From assembly GCF_037042905.1 (NCBI RefSeq), contig NW_026974148.1, forward strand, positions 62,001-126,000: a stretch of 64,000 nucleotides of DNA, read 5' to 3'. This DNA comes from Lytechinus pictus (taxonomy: Eukaryota). A program made the position numbers and the translations under genes. The notes below the pieces were generated by a model. It did no database searches, was not told the DNA's origin, and saw nothing but the letters and a program-made list of their open reading frames with translations. Below, one piece after another: positions 9,973-62,574 of the stretch (its first letter is position 1; each line of letters begins with the position of its first letter).

Positions 9973-12101
9973 ATGGATAAAAAATCAGTTTCGGAACTTA
10001 AAAAAATCTTAACTGACAGAGGAATACCGTGCAATGGAAAGCGTCGGGCAGAATTAGTGACTTTAGCAGAAAAGGCCGTTAAACTGTATCGTGAAAGAGA
10101 GGGTTGTGATCACGAACTTTCCGAGCGAAAGCGACGTTGTGTTGTTGTGGATGACGGCACTGTTGATCTGAATGGCAAAACAGTGCATTGGACTAGTGAC
10201 TTAAAGACACTGCCATCCATCACTTGTGGTGACGTTTTTGCATACTTGACGGTGGAATGTGGGTGGTCATCACAAAGACTGAAGCAACATAAATCTGATG
10301 ATGGCTATCGTATGTTTGTTGACAAACACATAGAAATGGTTGAAGTTGGAAGGATTGTTGACACCAACAATGATTTTGTGTACATTCGAGGCAAAGTCAA
10401 ACCGGAGCAGCGACACACTGCTGAGCGATATGATACATGGCTCTTGTGTTGTAGTACTGGGGAAGTAAAGTCAGCTGGTTGTGGATGTATAGCAGCGTAA
10501 GTTTGAACTTATATTAATTCATGTCATTTCGCAAGCTTGCATTTCGTACTGTCACTAGTGTCAGTCTCAGTGTCAACGATCTCCATGAATCATGGTCATG
10601 GAGGGGAGTCTGGCGCTGGCAAACCTGTCCTTTTTTAATTTTGCCACAAAAATCCTGGCATGCAAAAAACAAAAGGGGACAAACATCACTTCCATTTTTT
10701 TATTACATTTTTTTTTTTTAGTGATAATCTGATATATGACTGATGAGTGATGTGAACTTCAAAATGTGCTCATCAAATTGAATTAGAAATTTTACAAAAC
10801 AAGGCTTTTTTTAGTAATCTCATCCTACATGTAGGCTTTATAGACCTATATCATATGTTTTCAAAATCAATTTTTTAGGAATGCCATTTTGTATAGTTAT
10901 ATTGCATGTGTATAATTACCTTATCAATAAAAACTGAATAAAAAAATTAAGTATAGAATCTAGTTTTGAACATTTCACACAATTAATCTTTTCATAATTT
11001 TTGTTTGTTTATTCCTACAGGGATGCAGGGTCATGCAAGCATGTTGCTGCTTTGCTTTTCACAGTCGAGAATTTTTCATCCCGACATGTAGACAGAGGGA
11101 CAGCAGTTGGCACTGATCAGCAATGTAAGTGGAACCAGCCTCGACGTGAATCTATCCCAGTAAGAATAGCAGAGTTGGACTATCGTCACAACAAGGATAA
11201 ACCACAAAAGCATTCATGTACATCATTTAAACCAGTCTTGACGATTGACAGTGCAGCAATTTTGAAGATACGGGAGAAAATTGTGGCTTCTTGTACGACT
11301 AGTGGACATAATGCGATTGTGTTAACTTCGGTATTACCACCACCACCTAAGAACACGCCTCCATCAATCCCAGAGTTGTGTGCTCGATTCCAGTCATCAG
11401 ATGAGGAAAGCATTGTTGAATTCATCAGTCAAGCAACTTCGGATGAACATCTGGACTACTACCGCAGCCTCAGTCAAGATGATGGAGAGTGGTTGGACGC
11501 ACGAATTGGGCGCATCACTGCAAGCATTGCTGCTGACGTTCGCAGTTTGAAAGACACTTCAGAAGGGAAGACAGTGATACAGCGAGTCATGGGTACTGCA
11601 CCAAGGATCCGGACAAAAGCGATGGACTATGGTCATGCACATGAAAGTGTTGCTCGACAGATATATTCTAGTGAAATGGAAACACACCACAAGGACTTTG
11701 AATGTAACACGACAGGGTTACACCTCCTGCCAGAAGCACCATTTCTGGGAGCATCTCCAGATGGCATATCTACATGTGCATGCCATGCAAAGAGAGTTGT
11801 AGAAATCAAATGTACTCTGAAGCATAAGAATTTGTCTGTGAAAGAAATTCCAGCGATAGACCCTTCATATCATCTGGAATCTTCCAGTGGAGAAGTTTGA
11901 TTGAAGAAGACATCATCGTGGTACTTTCAGGCCCAACAACAGATGGGAGTTCTCGCGGTTGATAGGTGCGACTTTGTCATTTACACCAGAAAGGGCATCC
12001 ATGTCATTGACATTCCATTTGACCGTGTTCTGTGGGAATCACTGAAGGACAAAGCAACTCATGTTTTCTGCAAGAGAATAGTGCCATTGCTCATGAAATG
12101 A
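9973..12101 (+). pseudogene. ISL2EU accessory protein: SAP-like motif, SWIM zinc finger and YqaJ/lambda-exonuclease-like PD-(D/E)xK nuclease. Exons 9973-10496 and 11021-12101; one in-frame TGA at 11898-11900.
   Basis: LKKILTDRGIPCNGKRRAELV (SAP-like); CGC...CKH spans a GT-AG phase-2 intron (SWIM); RIGRITAS, FLGASPDG, VVEIKC and YFQAQQQM are nuclease motifs; the frame continues after the stop. Confidence 0.85.
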
Positions 12102-14134: not shown

Positions 14135-16493
14135 CTAGCAGTCTGTAATTCCCTTCCTGGGAGACGAATGAAGACGTTTCAATGGTTTCTTGCGTTTTGA
14201 TTGTCCAGATTTGGGGTCTCCATGACTGTAAAATAGGGGACCTTTCAAATTGCAAATTGCAGCGACAACCTGAACTAACATTGAAGACATATCCTTGAGA
14301 GAGTGCGGTATTTGGTGTTTCAAAATACGAAATGTTTTGATACGTTGAATCGCTCGCTCAACATGGATACGTAGTCTTGCAATGAGTCTGGTCCTATTGA
14401 TTTCTTCGACGTTCAGACGTTTTCCCTTTCCTGAGGTCCATTTTCTGGTAAAGGGCGGTGCTACCAAGGTTGAACCGACGTGCAAGAGCAGGTCTTCAAT
14501 ATGAAATCCTCTGTCTGCCATAACCTGATCCCCTTCTTCTAGTTTTTCAAGTAAACCAGAGTTCTGTGTCAAAAATTTATCCGAGACATTTCCACCCCAA
14601 AAATCACTCACAAAAGTGAATGCTCCATTGGGATTAATACCCACAAGGCACTTATAGGTATTATGACTTTTGTATTGAGAGTATGTGCGATATTGCTCCT
14701 TCTTATTTGCTGGTCTATCAATGAAGAATTATGTGCAGTCTATAACAACTCGCGTTCTTGGAAAATACTTCTTGAATTCAAATGGCATCCTACTCCTCAC
14801 TTGTAGCTGAGATGGCCAAATAAGCAGAGCTGGAACTAGGGTCTGATGTAAGTATGCGATCCAAGTTATTGTTGTTTTGGTGACACAAGTAGCACTCACG
14901 CTGAAAAGGTCGGCAAGTAACAGGAGCGGCAGGTTTAGTCTGATGCGCATTAATGTCATGACAAATTCAAAGAAAGGATCCAGATGACGTTGTTGACCTG
15001 GTTTCTTGTAACCTTTCTTCTCGTACTGCTTTTCTTTCATGCTTTCTGGTCCAGTCCAGTATTTCATCTTTGAAACTCCATCACTGATGCTATCCCAGAC
15101 ACCTGGATAGTAGAATGAAGAAAATACAGGAAAAAATAGAAAAATTAAGATTATGGAAAAAATACAATTCATTCATATATATATTTGGCTTGAAAAGAGG
15201 TAATAGAAGTGAGCAGTCATAAATGACTTAAAGAGACAAAGAGAACATCAGCTAAGAAAAATAGTATCAAGCTGAGGAAAAAAGTTAGTAATCCCATATA
15301 CATTACTTAAATCACATGTGTGTTACAGTGTTTGGATAAGTTTTCGAATGAGCTTTTTAACATTATGATTTTTGAAAAGATATTTGAACGGTTTAATTTT
15401 TTTCTCCAATAATGAAAAATAAATATGACTCACCATTCAACAGGGTTCTTGATTCAAGCCCAGTATAAAAGTTGACCCGTTCATCACTGTCGAGAACGCA
15501 GTCAACAGTATCTTCTGCTCTGCTCTTGAATTTCCTTGTTGATGCTTTCACAAGAGAAGCAATATCCTCACATGTCATGTCTGTTTGAGTTTGTACTTCC
15601 TGCACCATCGGTTTCATTTCCGCTGAAGACAAATAGTCATGTTGATCAGAATGACGCAAGTTTTCGGGAAGAGCATCCATATCTGTGAAAAACAAAAAGA
15701 GAAAGAGAATCTGATTATTAAACAGATTATCATTGAAAAATAACAAGTAACATTCATAAAAAAAGGGACCTACAATGAGCTTATTTAAATAAAGCAGTTT
15801 ATCATCATTAGATCTGGCACCGCAGACAGTACAAAGTCAAAGTAAGGGCTAAGCCAAAAGGCTCCAGATCGATGGCAAAATTAGACATTTATATCGCCAG
15901 GCATGGGCTTGGAATTTAGAATTATACTTACGTCCAACATGGCCATGATGTCCAAGAAAAGACTTTGAAGGTTTGGCCTTCTTTGACCTTGTCCTTGACT
16001 CCACCTCAACTTCACTTCCAACAGTACCGATGACATTGTCGTCTGTAGTTAGTGCAGGGTGATGCAGGGTCCCAGAAAAGACCCGGCGAGAGCTGGCTGC
16101 TTTAACCGGCGAACTGGTGGGGTCGATATCAGAGTCGGTCTGTTGCCGCTTACGAGCTGAAACTTCCCTGGCGGTGTCCATCTTGTCAATCGCTGTGGTA
16201 GGACGTTCTTCTCCAGTGAGACCGAAATTGTTCCAAAAAAAGTATCTAGGATAGCCTTTAGCATGACCATCTGGAGTAATCTGGTCTCTATCAAAATGTC
16301 TCGAACAAAGTCGCGATTTTTTTGTCAGATTAACTTTGTCCTTGCGCCGAATCAACCGCAGCCATGTCGCTCGTGTGCTGGCATCGGTGGGAAATTTCAC
16401 CCAAGTTACGTCCTTCATCCATCCCCATTTGTCAGGGTTCTTGCGCTTCGAATCATGAGCCCAGCACTGTGCGGACTCACAAAAGAAGACCAT
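14135..16493 (-). pseudogene. ISL2EU transposase: THAP domain, HTH and Harbinger-type DDE domain. Exons 16493-15932, 15682-15434, 15102-14135; one in-frame TAA at 14731-14729.
   Basis: N-terminal C-x4-C..FP..W..RLCSRHF (THAP); IDCT*, YSQYKSHNT, VMADRGF and RIHVERAI motifs; two GT-AG phase-1 introns join the frames; ORFs ending at 14729 and 14135 share a frame. Confidence 0.9.
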
Positions 16494-36800: not shown

Positions 36801-38162
36801 AGTGTCCGGACACCCGACCCCCCATCCTACTTTCTTTCAACAACAGACACATCAATCAGTATCACGAAATTACGGTATATCTACTTACGTGTTAATGAGC
36901 AACTCCAGAAAACTATCATTCTTGCTTTCTCCGGTTGAGAGCATTGCTATCCGGAACTTGTCAAACATTGCTGTTGACAATGTCATGCGACTCCTTTTTG
37001 CCTCGTATCTCTCCTTCCACCCATGGCAACGGCCCCGCGTACATATGTTCACATGAACAAAAAAAAAATAATTAGCTCTGACCAAATTTATCGATATTAA
37101 ACGAACTGGACGAAAACAATCTCGAAATACCGATTACCGTAGACCGCAACGCACTTGAAAAACATGGGAAACTAGTGTGTGCACGAACGGCCGGCCGGCT
37201 CGACGCGACCGCGCGCCGGCCCGCAAGCTAGCGTGGCTTTATTTGGTGCGACAAACTCGATTGCAGAATCGCCAAGATATTGACATGTACAATTTCACGC
37301 CATAGAGGGAGTAAACAGATATTTGAGTCGGATTTGAAAAAAGACCCGACGCCCTGATTAACGGTCATTTTTTTGCTTTCTCACTTTTTTTTTTCTCACT
37401 AAATACACGATTTCTTCGAAATTTCTTTGGCAGTTCCTATTTATTTATCAATCCCATCAAATGGTGTAAGTATGAACAAAATCCGTATTTTAGTCAAATT
37501 TACAGGCTACCAAAGCTGGAACTTACCTTTAAGGATGGAAAATAGTTTGAAAATATATAGATACAAACTTCATACAAATTATAAAAAAGAAGCAAAATAA
37601 ACTGGCATCATGATACTGTGAACAGAGATACAAGATTGTTCATGCAATTAAAAAACATTTTTGCAAACTATATAGCCTCGCATCATAAAAATAGATTGAA
37701 AATATCCAATTTTTTTTTATTTAAAAAGAAATAGATATAAACCAGCCGGGCTAACATATTGCAAGGTTGCAAAGATATAAACCGGGGATATAAAGCAAAA
37801 ATATAGTAGGCCTAAAAATGGAAATTAAATATCCTATTTTTAGTTTAGCCTATTTCACCTGTAAAATAGCAAAAAAATAGTATGAATAGGAGAACAAAAA
37901 TTGAAGCAATTTCATTTATAAAAATATATTTGTAAGAAAATAGGCCCTTTTTACAAAAAAAAAGTAAAAAAAAAAAAATAGATGGGAAATTGGACAAATG
38001 TATTTTCTCGCAACAAAAACTTCAAGGGGCCAGTATCACATTAAAACTTGGTTATCAAACATGTAAAACAAAATCCTAGATGGCATTTTAACTGAGATTT
38101 ATTTTTTTATCAACATTCAACGCTGAATTTTCTTATGTTAATTGTTAAGTGATGAACCTTAA

Positions 38163-38466
38163 AGGGATGGTCCGGGCGCTGAAATATTAATTCTAAATAA
38201 ATAGAGTGAAATTCACAAAGCAAACTGCTAACAATTTCATCAAAATCGGATGACAAAATAACGAAGTTTATTAATATTTTGTGAAAACAGATATGTGCAC
38301 ATCGTCATGAATATTCATTTGGTGGGCTGATGATGTGTCGACATCCCCATTTTCCTTTTTTTATGTTAAATATGAAATTATGATTGTTTCATTTTTTTTC
38401 AATACATGTGTATAAATGTGTCTCCATTGTGATGAAGTTGCTGCATTTAATAACTAATGCGGTTAA
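38163..38466. mobile_element. Left half of a TTAA-flanked (Kolobok-type) MITE split by Kolobok copy 2
   Basis: TTAA then AGGGATGGTCC; internal TTTCATCAAAATCGGATGACAAA and GGTGGGCTGATGATG are mirrored at 62575-62850. Confidence 0.85.
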
Positions 38467-39388: not shown

Positions 39389-42300
39389 ATGAAGGATGGT
39401 GATGGGCCGTCAGGTTTGGAGAAAGAAGAAAAGGGGAAGGCAAAAAAGAAGGATTCCGGAGGGTATCGATGCATGGTGATGCATTGTTCGTCGACTTATG
39501 CAACCACTACTGTACATACGATGCCAGGGCCGATGCCTCGACCTGGAGGTACCGGTAGGTTTAGCTCCTACCAAATGGCATGGATCAACTTTATCAAAAG
39601 ACACCGTGTGTTCGACCACTCATGGTTGAGACATATTCATGTGTGTAGCCTGCATTTTGATCAATCACAATATGATCAGACACAGCTCAAAATGTTTGAA
39701 CTGGGACTACGTAAATTGCCTCCGAAGCTGCTGGCAAATGCCATTCCCCATATCTACAATCCTACTGCTGACCCTGCCAGTGGCAGTGGACATGGACACC
39801 GTGATGGCACCCTTCTACATGTATCTCCTAAAGTGAGATCTAACTTTAGTACTTCAACATTGGCTAGCCCTTCATGTCCTTCCGCTAATGTTGTCCCGTC
39901 TGCCTCATCATCATTGGATGATCAGGACCCAGATAGATCATCTACATTTGTTGGCCTTGAGCATGAACATGATGGTGAAGACTACTCTCACTCTCAGACT
40001 CCAGTGAGCGCAGTGTCGGCACCGCTGGAGCCAGTGGCTGGAACTGCAACTTCGCCGACCTCTCAGGATGTTCGTAGGAAACGACAACGAACTTCATATA
40101 GCCGGAAGAAAGTGAGTAAATCATTTACAATTTAATAAGGCATGTTAGGAGTCTAATAAAAAATCAGTGTATTATTTTTTTTTGTCACGATAGGTCATTT
40201 GGGCAAAAATAATTTTCAGAGTAGAATCTAGAGTAGATCTACATCTAGACTTGCCTCTCATCATTACGGGTGTCTAATGTTAGTTCCAACAATCAAATAT
40301 GGATATTTTACATGTCTAGAGCCAAATCTAGACTCATTAAATGAAACATCAATATGAGGGGGGGGGGGGTGTAATGTAGGCCTTCATATATATCTATATA
40401 TAGAGTGTGAAGCTCAACACTCAGTCATATTGGTGTATCGGTATATGGAGATCGTGGCTGGATCGTGGGCGCACGCATGGTACGTTAGGTCGTGACCTCA
40501 GTAGTGCCGCGACGGACCATGCGTGCGACCACGCCATAAGTATAAAAGCCCCGATCTTCGAGTGATTCGAGAGAGTTTTCCAGAGTTTTCCAGTCAGTTG
40601 TTTGTTCCAGTCAGTCATCAGTCAGTAATAGTACAGTCAGTAATGAGCACGTCGAGTCAAAGGACATATCTAGTGGTAGCCATCGCCCGCAGATCGGTCA
40701 TCATCAGACGCGGATCCTAAGAAGGACTGGTTCAAGGTAAACCCTCGTCTCCACTATGGCGGGCAAGGTTACTACACAATGGCGCTACGTCTAAATTCGA
40801 ACCTGCGCTGGTTTAATAATTTTATTAAAGTGATTCAGCGCTTAAAATAGCTTTCCTAAACGTAGATTTAAGTATAAAACCTATATCACTTCCAAAAAAG
40901 AAAAGGAAAAGGAAGGAAATATCGTAGCTAGTTTATTAGATAATTTTGTAGTTTTACACATAGGTCATTTTGGTTGGGACCCGCCGCCACCGTAACGATA
41001 TATCTTTTTACACAACTATTCCAAAAAAGATTAGTGTTTTAGGGTTTTAATTGCCGTTTTGTGCACCGTTTTACCCTTACACAATTCCCTTAAACCAAAA
41101 TCTGGGTGTGTCGGGACGCCACGTAAGGCACGCGGAGTTTAACAATCCATGCATATTTTCTTTTGTCCGCCGCTCCCCGCGTCTATTGTTCGTTAGTTGA
41201 GAGCGCATGCCTTGCCCGATTGTTGCTTAATTGTGGCTGATTGCGGTAGATAAATCTACCCACCCCCATTTTCCCTGACCTTTTTTATTTAAATAATAGT
41301 TAGAATTTAATTGAATTAAACTTTGGAACTGTACTAAATAAATCAATAGCTGACTTTTGCTGTTGGTGATTTTATAGACTCTCGGTGAAGGATTATTTGC
41401 TTTACCTTGCTTGTATTTTTCTCTTAAACTGGCTGGCAATATAGGATTTTATTGCAAGCTGAATATATCTCGACGTAATAATAAATTCGCGCGCCTTCCA
41501 ACAGTTAATTGCTTCCTTTAGCTTTTACGATTGGAAATTAGTTCCCGAGCGAAAGCGAGTTTGTATTAGTACATTTAATTTTTGTTTTTGGCGCCGTATA
41601 CTGTTGCCAATCTGAAGAGTAGGGATTGGGATCTCGGATCTTGGTTATATTATGAAGGATTTGTTTTTGTGCTGCGGCGACCACAAATTAAATAACATTG
41701 CCGTGCAAAGACTTAAAATTCCGTAATATTATTTATCGTTTACATTCATCTGTATTCCCGTACGTGTTACTCTTCAGATTTCGGTAACTAATTCGCCCTG
41801 AATAAATCAATTTGTTACAGTTTGAAAACCTGGTTGAAAACGGAGTTGCCCTCTTGCAAAAAAATATAAGACGGGTTTCTCGCTCCGGATATAATTTCTT
41901 AACTTATTTTTCTTGCAAATCTAAAAGAAGAAAAATAATTATTTGACGAACGCTATTGATCGTGAAATACATATGCGTCGTCGTCTTCTGGATTGTTAGA
42001 GGACGGGATTTATTGTAAACTAATTTTACCACCCATGATCACATTCTTGTCAGCAATCCATTGCGGTATCGTTTTTAGTCAGTCCACTATTACAGGCTTA
42101 ACATTTATAAATCTCAACTATATTTGATAAATGGTTCGTGCGCGTATTTTTCTGGGAATTATAAAGCTTGTTAGTTGTTATTTTTTACATTCAGGCACTC
42201 ATAATTCTCATATACACGCGCCTCTCTAACATTTCATTTCGATTAAAAAAAAAAAGAAAAGGAGGGGAGTGGAGTGAGTCAGAATTATTTATCATCTCGA

Positions 42301-45300
42301 AAGTTCATTGACTTGTTCTAATTTAGGTTGTGCATTTGCCCCTGATTTTAAGGTTGGGCTTTTTCACTCTAGTTAGATTTGTTGAATCAGGATTTAGACT
42401 TGTCAAAGGCTGGGCTTCTTGTTTAATTCGCAGACTCTCGACCAAATATATTAAACTTTCCCCTAATTAAATTTGTTTAAACATATGTTAGTACATTAGT
42501 TAGGGATTTATTTAACATTAAGGATTGCTTCCCTCACTTTAAATTTATTAGAGAATCCAATGTTTTAAACGTCTTACATGTAGTTGCCTCCCTATAGGGA
42601 TACCTTTTTTATATTCGTGGGTTCCTGTTATTAGCAAGTTTGAAATAGTAATTAGCAAAAGCAACGTTATTGCCATAATTGAGTAATTGCAAGTTGGATT
42701 TGGGGGTTTGTCCACTGAATTATTAGGATATGATAGCGTATTTCTTACTTAATTTTCAGTTTGGACTTAGCTTAAATTCCAACTGCTAATTCCGGCGGCG
42801 GTATCGCAAGTCACTCCCTCAATCCAAGCGTCGCTTAAACTTGTCTATTTCATTACAGTTAATCCAGTTATTATCTTGTAAAAATAAGTCAGGATTCATT
42901 GAAGTGAATATATTGTTTTGTTTTCTGAATTTCAGGATCGTAACTGTAAATAAATTCTGAAGATTAAGAAATTGAAGTGCGTTACTGCTGCACCGTTTTA
43001 AGAATTTGAGCAGCAATTAGATTATTTATTCATTAAAAGTGTTTGTTATATACAGTCAAGTAGACTGAGTAATATTTACCATTCATTTGGCGAGAAGACG
43101 CCTGACACAGAGCCAAGTGGGCTTCTTGATTTTGATTTAGCTCATTTATTTATTGTTGTCTTTGACAAGCAAGAGCTCATTGTCTATATCTGTATAACTT
43201 GTAAATATATATATCAAAATTCGTACCCTTAATGTACGAGGGTGTACGGGCTTTCAATTAGTGGTTATTGTATGTTCATGCCTTCACTTTATATCTGTGC
43301 ATGAATAAATTATCAATTGTAACTTTGTTTACACATTGATATTTTGGGTTGTGCACTTGTACAAACGGGATTCTGAAATTATTCAGCATCCCGATTGCTA
43401 ATTATTACATTTAAAATAGTTGTCTTTGTAAATGTTTTCAGATTGTTATCGTATGTATGAGTACACATAGCGTCCAAATTGCGTGCGTTTGCCAAAATTT
43501 GATCGCATAAATTTTTGTAAGCCTATTTGAGCGATGCGCGTTGCATAAACTATAAGCATTTCAAGTACTTGTATAAAGTGTACTCAAATTCACAAGTTGG
43601 GCATACTATTTATAATTTGTATAGTATTACATTTTGTGACTTGTGAATTCCCTTTCGCGAATTGTATCTATTCAATACCATTCGTAAAACAATTTGCGAC
43701 TTGTATTTTTGCAATTTGCAGGTTGTTCATTTGGACTCCTCTTGTAACTTATAATATTTTGTAGAGTATAGTAAAGATAACATCGTAGTATAGGTATATC
43801 AGTAGTATTGTAGGTGTAATTGTAATCTGTACACATTATCTCCGAGAGACTTAAATTACCTTTTATATGTCCCTCCTATTATTCGTGTAATCATTTTGAA
43901 TGATAATTGAAATAATATGCCTGGGACACGGGACTATGAATATTATAGTTCAAGTTCCTCCAGCGATGAATCTTCCCATACAATTGACAGGTACCATCGC
44001 TGGTGGAGTGAACGTAAAGTCTCTCGTAGATACAATAATCGTTTGGATTCCTCTGAAAGAAGGAATCCTAGGTTGATGGAAGATCGTGATCATTCCCCTC
44101 AACGTTCAAGGCATTACCGCAATGCTCGTGGCAATGCGGTAAGTCGTGACGACAGGCAAGGGGAAGAAAATAATCATAACCGAAATAGGGATTATATTGA
44201 CAGATCCCATTCGCGCCGCAATCGGAGAGATCGCTCTATTTCCCCACGACACGATTATAGGGGAAATAATTGCTATTCTAGCGAGACTCCATTGCGAGGC
44301 GAATGCGATCGTCATCGCTATGACTCATCAAGAAGCGATCATCATCATAGGTCTCCCCTCCGTCGCAGTGGTAGGTCACGTCGTGAGTCCCCATCAAAAC
44401 ATCGGGATCATCATTATAACTATTATGATAATCAATACAATTCTCCACCACAAGGCCGAGGTGATTACCATGAGTATGATTACCGAAGACACGATCCATC
44501 TCCTCCACGTCGTGGGAGACGTTATGAATCCCCACACTACTATATGGATGATTATTATTATCACGAATGTAACGAATCTCCAATCCGACGTAGGGGAGAT
44601 GATTGCGAATCCCATTCACATAGATACCGAAATCGATCTCCATCACCTTATGAAGAAAGACGGAGGGGTGAAGGTTATAGGCGGGATCCCCCGAGAGAAT
44701 CATTTTATGATTCAAGGATGCGAGGATTGGATACTCGCTCCCCTTCACCTATTCGTCGTTCTCGATCACCATATGAAGGACGGAAGGATGACGGTTTTAG
44801 TCGGTATCCTCCTCGAGAATCATTTTATGAATCAAGTAGGTGGGATGCTCGCTCTCCTTCATCCGTTCGTTACTCAGAATGGAAGGGGAAAGACCACAGG
44901 CAGTCTTCCCCTCGAAGATCTTTTCGTGATCCTCATCGGCGGAATACTCCCTCTCCTTCACCCGTCCATTCTCGAGTAAGCACTGAGTACCCTAGCACAT
45001 CTTATTCCCGGGTAAGATCGAAAGATGAAGGAAACCATGGTTTACCCCCTCGATCCTCTCATGATCATCGCAGGCGTGAGTCTTGGTCCCCTTCATTTTC
45101 TCATCATTCAGACATCGATGGGTACCCAAGTGTTTCTTCATCTTCTGAGAAATGGACAATTGAAAATTATAAACGGCTAACCCCGCAATCATTCCATGAG
45201 CGTTCGAGGGATACTCGTTTATCTTCATCTGTCCATCTTCAAGATAATAATGATGGATACCAGAGTAATAGTTGCAGATTAGTGGCATCTTCTCCAACAT

Positions 45301-48300
45301 ATGAAAATTGTGAAACCATAGACAATAATATGCCCTCTGCCACTAATACTTTCTCACTGAAGCATATCAGGGTTACCCCAGATTCAGTAGAATATAAGGG
45401 ACCGAGTGGGTTTAACTTTCCCCCTCCCTTTAAGGCTCAAACCGAAGATACTGAGGAAACTGAAGTAGAAGTTACTACTCAGTCTCTTAAACATAGGTCA
45501 ATTGAACAACGAATTCATGTTTTGGAAGACAAGATGGACTTCGTGCTTAATCGCCTACAAATCCTTAATACACTGGAGTCCTCTGTCGAAGACCTAGCCA
45601 CTCAGATTTCCAAACTTGAGCAACTAACACGAACTTCACAAGAATCAAGGGGTTCCCTTAGAACTACTCCTGAGTCTATAGAGAAGCAGACCTCTCTCAG
45701 CCAACCTAATTCCTCCCCAGTCTTGACCAAATCCTTAGAGGAGAGTATTTCAGGTAATGGATGTGAGAGGCTTGATCCTAATGAACTCGGTGACCTATAT
45801 GCTAATAAATTAGTATCCATCGAAACTGAAGAATATCAGGGAAACGATCTGGGATCGGAGGAATGGGTCCGACCCCGATCCCAATATGTAAGGACCAACA
45901 CCCACTCTCTCCCCCTGTTTCAAGTTCACATCACATAACACCTGTCCAAAATAATAATTCTTCCCGTTCAGGTAGAAGTTTTGATCTATCATTTCTTTTG
46001 GTTGAGTGTGATGAGTCGAAACAGTTGGGCCAGCAGACAACTAGGGATGCACTGGGCAAGCAAAGTAGCCCCCCATCTCACGAGGAAGGGACTCCTCTGC
46101 ATGTCCATCCATTCTCCTATGGAGATAATCCGTCATTTATGTGCACCCCTTGGCTGCTTCCTCCTTGGCCTCCACCTTAAAAAAAAAGTGGAGATGAGAG
46201 GGAGAGGGTGAAGTAGAGTAAAGTAGACAGGGATTTTATTGCAATATTACACAATTATTGTATTATTACAATCATTACATATTAGAAATATGCATAATTA
46301 TATTGCCAGTTATTTTTGTATTTGTGCTCAAAGTTATATGAATTACATCATTTATATATTTGAAGTCTGTTAAATTCTGGCACATACACATTTCATGAAA
46401 CTTCCCTCTTGCCACAAATTCCAGAATACAGTTTGAGGGGAAGGTTCTTCTGATTAGAATATAAATTTATGCTACAGATTCATGACTCTATAATTAATGT
46501 AATTCATGGTAAACATTTCAAGATTCTTATATACACAGATACCTTTTTGTAATTAATATAATTCATAGGAAATATTTGAAATGTTGCAATGAGATCCCTA
46601 ACTCACTTTATAAGAAACGTGCAGTAAAATGCTGATTTTGTAAACAAGGACTTGCCGTTTGTTGTGGCAACAATATTGTCAGCAATGTAATCTGTATACT
46701 TGGGATTGGACTTTATTTTTATGTAATATACAATATGCACATTCATCTTTTAATCAAACAGTCATACTTTGACCTTCAATACAGTCAATGAAAATTGTTT
46801 AAACGATATTATGAACGATGTGCAGGTACCAGAAGTAGATTTTCCCACCTCTTTTAAGAATACTGGAGCTAAAAGTCTGCTGACAATATAAACATTCTAA
46901 TCATAAACCATGTTGCGAAACCAGTCTGACAGCACGTTTGATTCCAAGAGGTTTTGGGTCGTCTGCTCAAGTGCATCCTCTACTGGTTTCGATCTTTGTA
47001 ATACAAACCTGCTTGAGAAGAGAACAAGAAAAACAGGGTTTGATTTGCTGAATATGCATGTATATAAAAAGGTCCTTTCTCTGTTTTTACTATTGTCCTT
47101 TTTTGCGCAGGTTTACCCTAGGAGGTTCACTATTACGTCATATTGCCATTCTGGGTATTCTCAAACATATATTGCGATAAGTTGGAATCGTATTGGAGAG
47201 GTTTACATGAAATCATGTTAATCTGACCTATTTAAATAAAAACCTTCTAAACAAATATCAATACGACAGAATTAGAATAGACCCTAAACAGTGACTTTTG
47301 GAAAATATAATTTTCATTTATATGACCGTTGTTGAACCTCATTGGGTAATCCCAGGTAACATTGTAGGCTTTCCTATACTGTCCATCTGCAACTATTATC
47401 CACACGATTATGAATGCCCTCCGGTGAGATTATGGAATAAAAACTTGTACAAGGGCATATATATATACTTTACTCATATACTGACAGATACCTAATATGT
47501 TTTCGTCAGTCAATAGTTTGTTCAGGGGGACACATTATTTACATGCCAAATGGAATAGAGGTTTTAATGGATGACACCGTGTTTAGTAATGTAATATTTT
47601 ATACCTTTTTAAATTAAATTTGATGTGTGTTTTGTTGATCGGGGATCTTTATTGGCATCATTAATTTGTAACAGGCCAAGACAAAGGTGATGTTTAATTC
47701 CCCTTTTAATCTTTTAATCTCCCCTTGGTTTTTTATGGTTGGGAGGAATATGGAGATCGTGGCTGGATCGTGGGCGCACGCATGGTACGTTAGGTCGTGA
47801 CCTCAATAGTGCCGCGACGGACCATGCGTGCGACCACGCCATAAGTATAAAAGCCCCGATCTTCGAGTGATTCGAGAGAGTTTTCCAGAGTTTTCCAGTC
47901 AGTTGTTTGTTCCAGTCAGTCATCAGTCAGTAATAGTACAGTCAGTAATGAGCACGTCGAGTCAAAGGACATATCTAGTGGTAGCCATCGCCCGCAGATC
48001 GGTCATCATCAGCAGCTTCGATACTTCGAGGACATTACCAGACGCGGATCCTAAGAAGGACTGGTTCAAGGTAAACCCTCGTCTCCACTATGGCGGGCAA
48101 GGTTACTACAGGTAAATAGACTTCTGTTGAATGCTGGTGTTCTACTTCTGACAACTTGCTTTGGTCTAAAGGAAAAGCAAATTTATTCAATTTCGGTCAG
48201 GTCTGAACAGCAGTGCTTGGGTCTGATGGGTCGTCAATTTTTTTTTTATGCCATGCCGGTGACGATATTTCCCAATTGAATAATAGGGACGTTGTATACA

Positions 48301-51300: not shown

Positions 51301-54300
51301 TTTGTCTTCTTTACAGATCTGAACCAAAGAGCCCTTTAATGCAGGAGAAGTTTATCGTGTTTGAGAGTAACCTGATGGAGCTCTTTGAAGTATGCATCTC
51401 TTGCCTTTCTAAGAATGTGCATGTGGAAAAAGTTTCTTCACAATCTTTAGGATCTGCACTGAAAGTTGTGACAACCTGCCTAGACTGTGGTCTTCGCCGG
51501 GAATGGCTCAGTCAGCCAAAGGTTGGTGACATCTACGCGGGCAACATGCTTTTGTCTGGTGCTATTCTGTTTGGAGGAAGTAGTCCCACTAAAGTGCTTC
51601 GTGTCTTGCGACACATGAATGTGAAGGCCATTACAGTGGAAACATTCATGAAACACCAGCGAGAGTACCTTCAGCCAGCAGTCATCAGAGTAGCCAAGAA
51701 GGAGCAGAGGAAGCTGATCAACGAAATTCCAGAAGGGGAGCCTCTCATCCTTGGTGGTGATGGGCAGTCTGATTCTCCGGGCCACTGTGCAAAGTATGGA
51801 TCGTACACCTTGATGGATCTCAAGAGGAACAAAATCTTGGATGTGCAATTGGTCCAGGTATGGCAAGAAATTTTCTTTTACAATTCTTTTACAATTCATA
51901 ATCAATATTTGGGTGAGTGCTATGGGAATCAAACAGATCAAATTAAACTGGCATGCATTGTTATATAGATATATGTATGCATAGCTTGAAAAAAAAGTTA
52001 TTTTTATAACTTTAAGCCACATTACTCTTTCAAAATGTATTTCTTCTACTCATAATTTTTCATTGCAAAGGGAATCAATTTGCCATTTTTTTTTCCTATC
52101 ACATTTCCTAAATTGGTATTTAAATTGTTGTTGCATCCTTATATTTTCTTACAGAGCAATGAAGTTCGCAATAGCAATGCGATGGAGTTGGAAGGTCTGG
52201 CAAGGGGACTCACTAGTCTGAAGGAGAAGGGGGTCAATATACGTATGCTGGTGACTGATAGGCACCTCCAAGTGGCTAAATGGCTCCGAGAGAATTATCC
52301 TGACATCAATCATAGATATGATGTGTGGCATATTGCGAAAGGTATGCAGGAAGTACTTTCATTTCTCATAATTATCCTTTGTTTTTATGTTTTGTTATGT
52401 ATTATGTTGAATTGAGAACAATGTCCGGTCCATTATGTTGAATTAAGAATAATTCCAGGTCCTTCCTCCATTTTCCCCTTTATTTTCAGAACATGATGGG
52501 GGGGGGGGGGCTGGGTCACCATATGCCCATCAATGAAAAATTGTATCCTCTGTAAGTAAGGTTTTCTTTCATGTTTGCTCTGATAGTAACAGTCCCTTGT
52601 GTAGAGATCATTTCTTATTGACATGCATAGATATATTGAATAAGAAACTTGGTTGAATTATCATCTTAGGTCTGAAGAAAAAGATCATCGCAGTGTCCAA
52701 GCTGAAAGATTGTGAAGTTGTTGGCAGATGGAAGCGGTCCATCAACAACCATGTTTATTGGTGCGCCTCATCAACCCCAGATGGTGATGGAGAGGTCATG
52801 GTGGCCAAGTTCAAGTCTATCCTAAATCACATGCGGAACATACATGAAAACCACAGTGACGTCTATCCTGCATGCTCTCATGGAGAGAATCATGGACAAA
52901 GAGAGTGGATGAGGCAAGGTTAGTATTGCTAGGACAGTTTTTTTGCATGTTAAGTAACATATTTAGTGAAGATTAGTGGATGCAAAACAATGATAACTGC
53001 TTGATTGCTAAAACAAACGATTACTTGCCAGTAAAATTTGCAGGGGCGATTTTAACAATTTAATGATGCCCTACCAATTTTGATAATTCAGCTTTGATGT
53101 GCAAGTAGTCAGGTTGTCACAATTTTTAGGCAGGAGAATGTGTCTTAACTTTGGTCTCCCTAAATTCAGTGTGAAAGGAATAATGTATGAACTTAAACTT
53201 GCCTACATGTACATCCAATGCTGATTTATGGTACATATGGTGTGCAGAGTGAGATTTGAATTGACTGTGATAAGAGAACATGCATGTATCATGACCTGAG
53301 AAGCGAGTCAATATCAAATGTCAATTTATTTAGCTATGCGAATTCACATAAAAAACAAGATACTGTAGATTGTGTCTTAATCGTGTCATGACGAAAAAGG
53401 GTGATGGCACAACAAATGATGACTGTGATGGGTATGCAGACTTTTATAGATATACACCATGTGTAAGTTATTTATCTAATCCTTTTCATTTTGATAATTA
53501 CAAAATAGTACATACTACATTGGATCAAAGAAGTACAGGAAGCAATGAGAATATTTTACATTTAAGTTTAACTCCTGTTTTATTTTTTAAATTCACAGGT
53601 ACGAAACCGTTTGAAAAGTTGTCTGAGGAACTATCAAAAACCAGACTGTTGAATGACATGAAGAAAATGTCTCCTGTTGACCAGACCAGTTCAGTCGAGG
53701 CCTTTCATAGTGTGATGCTCTATTGGTGTCCTAAGATGCTGGCCTACTCATATGCCGGGATGAAGTGCAGGTAAAAAAAATTGCAAGTCTATGTAGTTGA
53801 TTTTTGGGTTGAATGAGTGTGGAAATACGTGCTTGACCGAAGCGGTGATTGAAAGTAAATGGCCCTCAACCTCATTACAAAGATTTATATATTATTCTTC
53901 ATCATATTCTTGAAGAAAAGCTTTGTCATAGTTTTAATAAAATAGATTAAAGTTTTTACATATTAGTCATGATATGTCTACATGTACTGTACATGTATAA
54001 AGCCCAATAGTGATATCGTGGTAGAGAACATCTTGTACTAAAATCGATTACAGTTATTATTTTGTTTTTCTTTGTACTCTGGTTATTTGTAGATTACATC
54101 TTGCCGCCTTGCACTGGAATGAGAATGCTGGTCGAAGTCATGCAACTAAGGCAGATGGGACACCTATGTACCGTATCAATTACCCCAAAGCCAAAGAAGG
54201 CGGCCACACAGTTTCCAAAGCGTTGACAGCTTGCACATTCAGTGAGTATATTTCAACCTCCCTTCCCCTGTAAAATAATTGTTAGAAAATAGGGGGTCTT

Positions 54301-61967: not shown

Positions 61968-62574
61968 TCTAGCGCGTGATCCCGTATAAAGCAGAAAGCG
62001 AGAGTCGAAACAAATGTAAACAAACACCGCACGTGTACGTAGAGCTTGGGGGAAAGCAATCGACCGGATCTACTTTCAAAGTCAGGCCGGTCTTCGGCAC
62101 ACGAACGTTCAAAGATTTCAACACAAAAAAAAATAAAAATGAGTGAAGAAAATGTGACATAAAAGAATGTTTCCGCAAATATTTCGAAATCGTAAGCCCG
62201 ATAATTATTATTTATTATATCAGCGATATATATAAGGCAAAGGAATATGTACACAACCATTATTTAGCTGAGTTTTTAACTTTTGAAAAAAAAAGGAAAA
62301 CATTTTCTGGAGCTCTGTGTATGATTTTATGTGGAACATCCGGGGAACATAATGAGAGGGCAGGCATGACGTGACGTCACATAGACCGAGGTGGAAATCG
62401 TGAGAAGTTTCCTGGCTCGTTAGAGATGCTATTTTGGAGGCATTTTAGTGGAGGATACCAAGGTGCCAGACGACTTTTATGGTATTATATGTGGATAAAC
62501 AGATTATATATGTAATATGCTTTCCTTACATACCATATTCCAGGATATTTATTTCCTTCTTATGTCAACTTTAA

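Follow-up and report, generated by a model that had tools for sequence, protein, structure and literature searches.

A candidate -1 frameshift site in the only gene of a pol-less LTR retroelement from Lytechinus pictus

Frameshifting by -1 in retroelements is normally explained by the need for little Gag-Pol beside much Gag. A stretch of Lytechinus pictus DNA (64,000 nucleotides, positions 62,001 to 126,000 of the forward strand of contig NW_026974148.1, NCBI RefSeq assembly GCF_037042905.1; hereafter the window, whose own numbering is used throughout) raises the question of what such a signal would be doing in an element that has no pol. The segment from 40444 to 48110 of the window has long terminal repeats (LTRs), a 4-bp target duplication and homology to other copies that ends at the outer repeat ends, which mark it as an LTR retroelement. 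Toward the 3' end of its sole open reading frame (ORF), a first-pass annotation had noticed a -1 frameshift cassette that leads into a short tail. We favor the reading that the cassette of this non-autonomous LTR element works as a -1 frameshift site of the retroelement type, and give that reading about an even chance of being correct; the slippage, its efficiency and the use of the tail are what we infer. The element itself is recently inserted and non-autonomous (pol-less), and its ORF product is largely disordered and Arg/Ser-rich.

The cassette is laid out as it had been described. The heptamer G_GGA_AAC stands in X_XXY_YYZ phase, which was read directly and checked from the ORF start at 43917, and it belongs to the shiftiest heptamers for animal ribosomes (PMC5009743). 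A perfect 9-bp stem follows, in which UGGGAUCGG (45850-45858) pairs with CCGAUCCCA (45875-45883); the spacer between heptamer and stem has 4 nt if the U-A pair is taken as the start of the stem, and 5 nt if the first G-C pair is. The frame-0 stop codon (TAA at 45936-45938) comes 30 codons past the site. The last -1 stop before the heptamer lies three codons upstream, at 45827-45829, and after the shift the -1 frame stays open for 111 codons, to the TAA at 46178-46180. The lengths of 673 and 754 aa given for the two predicted products are arithmetically right. If the site functions as we propose, most ribosomes would stop at 45938 and release the 673-aa product, and a minority would pause over G_GGA_AAC, where the 9-bp stem-loop 4-5 nt downstream would resist unwinding. 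Paused ribosomes would slip back one base and read the -1 frame to 46180, and the slippage product would be a 754-aa minor isoform carrying a 111-residue Pro/Ser-rich tail (Table 1).

We estimated how often the parts of this arrangement are expected by chance. Two in-phase heptamers are seen in the ORF and 1.0 is expected from codon shuffling; the other one, at 44261, leads into a -1 frame that closes at once. The cassette heptamer sits in the last 5% of the ORF, and the probability of finding at least one heptamer within the last 60 codons is 0.08. Perfect Watson-Crick stems of at least 9 bp at a spacer of 3-9 nt follow 3 of the 1467 heptamers in the window (0.2%), and such stems occur in 0.34% of dinucleotide shuffles of the 55-nt segment and at 0.9% of ORF positions. 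The probability that a frame remains open for at least 111 codons from a random position is 0.016-0.02. The joint chance of heptamer, position, stem and open frame is roughly of the order of 1e-5 per ORF, if these are independent.

Comparison at the DNA level covers three copies of the element in two species, namely the copy in the window, a copy in L. variegatus (L001) and a second copy in L. pictus (L002); a divergent subfamily (P0003, P0008, P0009 and P0010) is known as proteins only. The 7.67-kb unit aligns end to end with L001 at 85% and with L002 at 90%. The check on sister copies that the first-pass annotation had proposed comes out in its favor, with the heptamer, the stem and the open -1 frame kept in both. 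Heptamer, both stem arms and both arms of a putative second, pseudoknot-forming stem are identical in the three copies. Between codon 641 and the last base of the pseudoknot model the copies differ by three nucleotide changes, none of them in the heptamer or in paired bases; one affects the codon that immediately precedes the heptamer, one the spacer (45849) and one the loop (45871). Each of the three replaces a frame-0 residue, an observation that speaks against constraint on a peptide motif in frame 0. Two of the three are silent in the -1 frame, and one of those two lies just upstream of the shift site, where the -1 frame would not be read.

The protein subfamily extends the comparison to greater distances. 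Its members are about 58% identical to the ORF overall and 45% identical over residues 470-640. Between P0003 and the ORF, residues 641-661 (QGNDLGSEEWVRPRSQYVRTN) are identical at 20 of 21 positions, and the region upstream is identical at 24-45%. The island ranks within the top 0.8% of all 21-residue windows, and no second one of this kind occurs in the C-terminal third; its 63 nt begin at the first heptamer codon and reach as far as the codon that follows the final base of the pseudoknot model. The sole difference within it, W650R, needs a change at the first base of the codon, within the loop. The length of frame 0 past the site varies among the family proteins.

The -1 frame downstream of the site is also open in all three copies. 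Over 239 nt the tail is free of indels in these copies, whereas flank rates against L001 predict 3.2-5.2 events (P about 0.006-0.04), and indels resume directly past the tail stop. Of the three reading frames across the tail, the -1 frame has the lowest omega (0.48, against 0.77 for +1 and 2.7 for frame 0). Overall, the evidence that the tail is coding is suggestive, not conclusive. The earlier description of the tail as non-Pol agrees with our searches, which returned no Pfam match and none among 1.84 billion representative proteins and on which we rejected a protease or pol remnant. Those predicted proteins that extend to the site remain in frame 0 and either end in it or are spliced off; the tail is present in none of them. 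A simple indel private to this copy, which had been considered in the first-pass annotation, is excluded because the two frames are joined in none of the three DNA copies (0/3), the database proteins follow frame 0 and the tail is unmatched. It is unlikely that the tail is translated separately, starting at ATG 45863, as this codon lies 1.9 kb into the mRNA; moreover, W650R in P0003 and P0010 requires a change in a base of that ATG.

Several observations weigh against a working frameshift site. The usual spacer for eukaryotic -1 signals is 5-9 nt, and the 4-5 nt found here are at the short end of that range. The minimum free energy (MFE) fold of the 55-nt segment has -18.1 kcal/mol with z = -0.64, and 45 of 200 shuffles fold equally well; the 161-nt fold gives z = -0.23. 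As for the H-type pseudoknot that had been proposed, the complementarity between the loop and downstream sequence is real, but a 5-bp stem 2 is at chance level (P = 0.27-0.31) and has no support from covariation. None of the 16 pairs examined varies among the three copies (0/16), the stems being identical in all of them, and at 94-98% identity across this region the conservation of the cassette is weakly tested. An Rfam search returned no frameshift family, the two sub-threshold matches being attributable to chance and neither lying at the cassette. In the tail, simulation gives a probability of 0.15 for nine or more synonymous changes and of 0.43 for the absence of a stop, second codon positions are often changed, and the sequence lacks any match in the Pfam and representative-protein searches. 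Part of the island's conservation could be due to the donor-like GTAAGG that it contains. Finally, the ORF is no recognizable Gag, and the analogy with gag-pol signals is therefore indirect.

The near-zero fold z-scores, the lack of covariation, and a tail that has no homolog and whose coding signal is below significance would all fit a heptamer and stem that were left over from an ancestor or fortuitous, with frameshifting negligible or irrelevant and 45939-46180 a 3' untranslated region. The island would then be under another constraint, for example on a short peptide motif at the C-terminus of the ORF or on RNA sequences that act in packaging, export or stability. Additionally, some 250-nt non-coding bins match the conservation of the tail (93-95%), Arg/Ser-rich ORFs leave other frames open too (for example, 277 codons at 44146-44979), and the cassette was chosen after the fact from a scan. 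We regard this explanation as a serious possibility, although of clearly less than even probability. It does not sit well with a joint chance of about 1e-5 per ORF, nor with an island that starts exactly at the heptamer codon and stops at the end of the pseudoknot model. The changes within the island alter frame-0 residues and spare paired bases, which is the opposite of what a peptide motif predicts, and while the tail is gap-free against L001, no 250-nt non-coding bin is.

The donor-like sequence offers another way to account for the island, namely that GTAAGG at 45888 is a real 5' splice site, that an alternative C-terminus is taken from a downstream exon of the element or of a host gene, and that the island represents an exon end plus its donor. 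TAT/GTAAGG falls on a codon boundary, and the L. pictus model P0010 exits the ORF exactly after ...RSQY into an unrelated Delta-like gene; P0001 also exits the ORF early, and an acceptor-like pyrimidine tract with a CAG ends at 45971. However, a donor takes about 9 nt and not a 63-nt island starting at the heptamer, P0009 and P0010 are evident chimeras of repeat and host genes, and at L002 the RefSeq annotation (P0005) has one unspliced exon, its coding sequence ending at the frame-0 stop. The 84-nt intron defined by the donor at 45888 and the acceptor at 45971 keeps frame 0, which has stops beyond it in L001, and these stops rule out a spliced frame-0 continuation; the two acceptor-like AGs at 45970-45975 that were inspected by eye, no systematic scan having been made, fail to register the -1 frame with the donor. 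Alternative splicing at this position thus appears quite improbable.

No Pfam match to pol (protease, reverse transcriptase, RNase H, integrase) was found in the ORF, in the tail or in the ten longest stop-free internal pieces, six of which fall in 40804-43916, and the element is therefore considered non-autonomous. The same ten pieces gave no sign of a degenerate pol elsewhere in the element. Outside the main ORF there is no ORF or stop-free piece longer than 104 codons. The cassette resembles retroviral and Ty3/Gypsy gag-pol and gag-pro signals in its heptamer class, phase, short spacer and G+C-rich stem directly downstream, as well as in its location, late in the first ORF of an element bounded by LTRs, and in a -1 frame that opens just upstream. 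In a survey of animal retroelements, pol was in the -1 frame in 28 of 51 (PMC5009743). Unlike in gag-pol signals, the -1 frame here has 111 codons with no protease, reverse transcriptase or integrase, the element has no pol, the upstream ORF shows neither a capsid fold nor a zinc knuckle, and the pseudoknot is unsupported.

Frameshifting without a complete pol has precedents. The PEG10 heptamer is a frameshift site of retroelement type. Both PEG10 and the PNMA-type domesticated Gypsy gag genes keep -1 frameshifting with no complete pol to serve (PMC5009743). The element in the window is similar in retaining a retroelement-type site without a complete pol. In contrast to PEG10 and PNMA, which are immobile, single-copy host genes with Gag domains, it is multi-copy with near-identical LTR pairs, and these features together with the target duplications indicate an element that is still mobile; Pfam and PDB searches gave no named match to PEG10/PNMA-type proteins. 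In HeT-A, frameshifting takes place inside the sole structural gene of an element without its own reverse transcriptase (PMC5009743), and the cassette described here is likewise found in a sole structural gene of an element that has no reverse transcriptase. HeT-A is a non-LTR telomeric element with a Gag-like ORF, whereas the present element is LTR-bounded and its ORF is not recognizably Gag.

Known LTR elements without pol provide a further comparison. The TR-GAG elements of plants have a single ORF that is a true GAG and are shorter than 4 kb (PMC4350172), pol-less LTR elements are common in echinoids, and non-autonomous Troyka elements are abundant in sea urchins (PMC12440569). The element in the window is like TR-GAG, the LARD elements of plants and Troyka in having LTRs, a primer-binding site and a polypurine tract without pol. 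It differs from TR-GAG in its length of 7.67 kb and in an ORF that is no recognizable GAG. Troyka has CG...CG termini and 3-bp duplications (PMC12440569), whereas the present element has TA...CA termini and 4-bp duplications and so lacks the Troyka hallmarks. The portions of these reports that were consulted contain no mention of a frameshift cassette for either Troyka or TR-GAG (PMC12440569, PMC4350172).

The cassette is most simply read as a gag-pol-type frameshift signal that would have been kept after the loss of pol. A more specific proposal is that a currently active pol-less element, with a disordered Arg/Ser-rich protein unlike Gag as its sole product, repurposes the ancestral gag-pol signal to control how much of a long isoform, bearing a Pro/Trp-rich C-terminal module, is made relative to a short one. 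This proposal is tentative, and we consider it somewhat unlikely. If it were true, programmed frameshifting would have been retained and reused after polymerase loss. A mobile pol-less element with an intact signal into a short non-enzymatic tail would show selection for another purpose, and would add an invertebrate case beside PEG10, PNMA and HeT-A.

The ORF upstream of the site has 0 stops and 0 frameshifting indels in the three DNA copies, all of its indels being in-frame. In the comparison with L001 there is 1 indel event per kb in the ORF versus 13-22 per kb in the flanks, and omega is about 0.6. The ORF is the only gene of the element and is under some constraint. Its composition is Arg/Ser/Tyr/Asp-rich, Arg accounting for 19% and Ser for 18% of the first 460 residues. 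AlphaFold2, supplied with a 9-sequence alignment, returned a model with a mean predicted local distance difference test (pLDDT) score of 36 that is disordered except for one confident helix at residues 521-578; with an alignment of only 9 sequences, a fold may have escaped notice. Pfam searches of the ORF gave no domain above threshold, a motif scan for CX2CX4HX4C found no CCHC knuckle, and there were no PDB relatives of the C-terminal third. Of the hallmarks of Gag, neither capsid-like helical domains nor a zinc knuckle could be recognized. The ORF had been said to occupy the gag position, a view that we do not uphold, given that it begins 3.1 kb after the primer-binding site, has no CCHC knuckle or Pfam domain, and yields a mostly disordered model. 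Within the ORF we also observed a tandem duplication of ~120 nt (44633-44756 and 44756-44870, 76-82% identical), which is present in L001 and L002 as well and repeats an Arg-rich ...PPRESFY.. peptide unit.

All protein relatives of the ORF come from L. pictus and L. variegatus, and they bear database names such as 'serine/arginine repetitive matrix protein-like'. These SRRM-like names reflect composition only. Host SR/SRRM proteins are marked by an RRM or PWI domain and a single-copy host locus. The ORF has no such domain, and it is flanked by LTRs and occurs in two species at loci that are unrelated. The L. pictus models P0009 and P0010 fuse part of the ORF to host genes, with a pericentriolar-material-1-like N-terminus and a Delta-like DSL protein as partners. 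Such fusions, like the SRRM-like names, look like annotation artifacts that stem from an unmasked repeat. As the ORF is annotated as SRRM-like host genes in both Lytechinus genomes, recognizing it as a transposon gene would clean these annotations.

The remaining anatomy of the element is summarized in Table 1. The two LTRs of the copy in the window are one mismatch and one 29-nt indel apart. In all six LTRs examined (6/6) the termini are TA...CA and not TG...CA. The reverse complement of the putative primer-binding site ends in ...GCGCCA and includes GGTTCGAA, a T-loop-like motif, and so looks like a tRNA 3' end. Apart from one change the site is kept in L001 and L002. The non-coding region upstream of the ORF accumulates 17-22 indel events per kb between copies. 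By eye, an acceptor-like ...TTTGCAG/G can be seen near 43721, and the donor-like site in the LTR lies about 190 nt past the TATAAAA; the 3.1-kb stretch that bears the primer-binding site could be an intron in the leader, in which case a spliced RNA would be the template for the ORF.

Table 1. Coordinates in the window of the LTR element, its frameshift cassette and associated features
Feature	Position	Strand	Remarks
Left target-site duplication GGTA	40440..40443	+	same 4 nt at 48111-48114
5' LTR, 333 bp	40444..40776	+	direct repeat with 47749-48110; L001/L002 homology begins here
TATAAAA in 5' LTR; donor-like AAG/GTAA	about 40541; about 40734	+	
Primer-binding site candidate	40780..40803	+	24 nt, begins TGG, 3 nt past 5' LTR
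Upstream internal non-coding region	40804..43916	+	longest ORF at most 76 codons
Sole ORF of the element, 673 aa	43917..45938	+	intact in all three DNA copies
Open -1 frame, predicted Pro/Ser-rich tail ending WLLPPWPPP	45830..46180	+	116 codons, 111 after shift site
Candidate slippery heptamer G_GGA_AAC	45839..45845	+	codons 641-643 CAG GGA AAC (45837-45845)
Stem-loop, 9-bp stem and 16-nt loop	45850..45883	+	present in MFE folds of 55 nt and 161 nt
Candidate pseudoknot stem 2	45866..45896	+	GGUCC 45866-45870 complementary to GGACC 45892-45896
Splice-donor-like GTAAGG	45888..45893	+	TAT/GTAAGG at codon boundary after ...RSQY
3' internal non-coding region	46181..47740	+	13.4 indel events per kb versus L001
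Polypurine tract GGGAGGAA	47741..47748	+	adjoins 3' LTR; same in all three copies
3' LTR, 362 bp	47749..48110	+	L001/L002 homology stops here
Right target-site duplication GGTA	48111..48114	+	

L001 and L002 reside at unrelated loci, and their homology to the element stops on both sides at the outer LTR ends. The LTR pair of each copy differs by at most one mismatch and at most one indel, whereas the copies differ among themselves by 10-15%; these differences therefore arose in lineages that went on transposing as they diverged, and the copies themselves are young insertions. A perfect 4-bp target duplication of its own flanks L001. The LTRs of L002 (6488-6495, 14207-14214 region) are 100% identical, yet this copy has no evident 4-bp duplication, unlike the other two; recombination between copies may be one possible reason. 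No further copies were found in the window, in the flanks of the loci or in two metagenome scans.

The window as a whole looks transposon-rich. THAP-domain ORFs are present at 39389-40135 (+, E = 1e-7), ending about 300 nt before the insertion site of the LTR element, and at 15849-16493 (-, E = 4e-9). The latter is adjoined by a transposase ORF of the Harbinger/PIF type (DDE_Tnp_4) at 14135-14644 (-, E = 2e-31). Two neighboring ORFs at 9973-10500 and 11001-11900 (+) have domains of the SAP type and of the YqaJ-like viral recombinase/exonuclease type (E = 6e-17), and this pair is possibly another mobile element. A weak match to a Mutator-like transposase, below the Pfam cut-off, is located at 51339-51968 (+). 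Finally, 107 nt at 38162-38268 are 86% identical to positions 15952-16057 of L002 and represent a short interspersed repeat that is outside the LTR element in both places.

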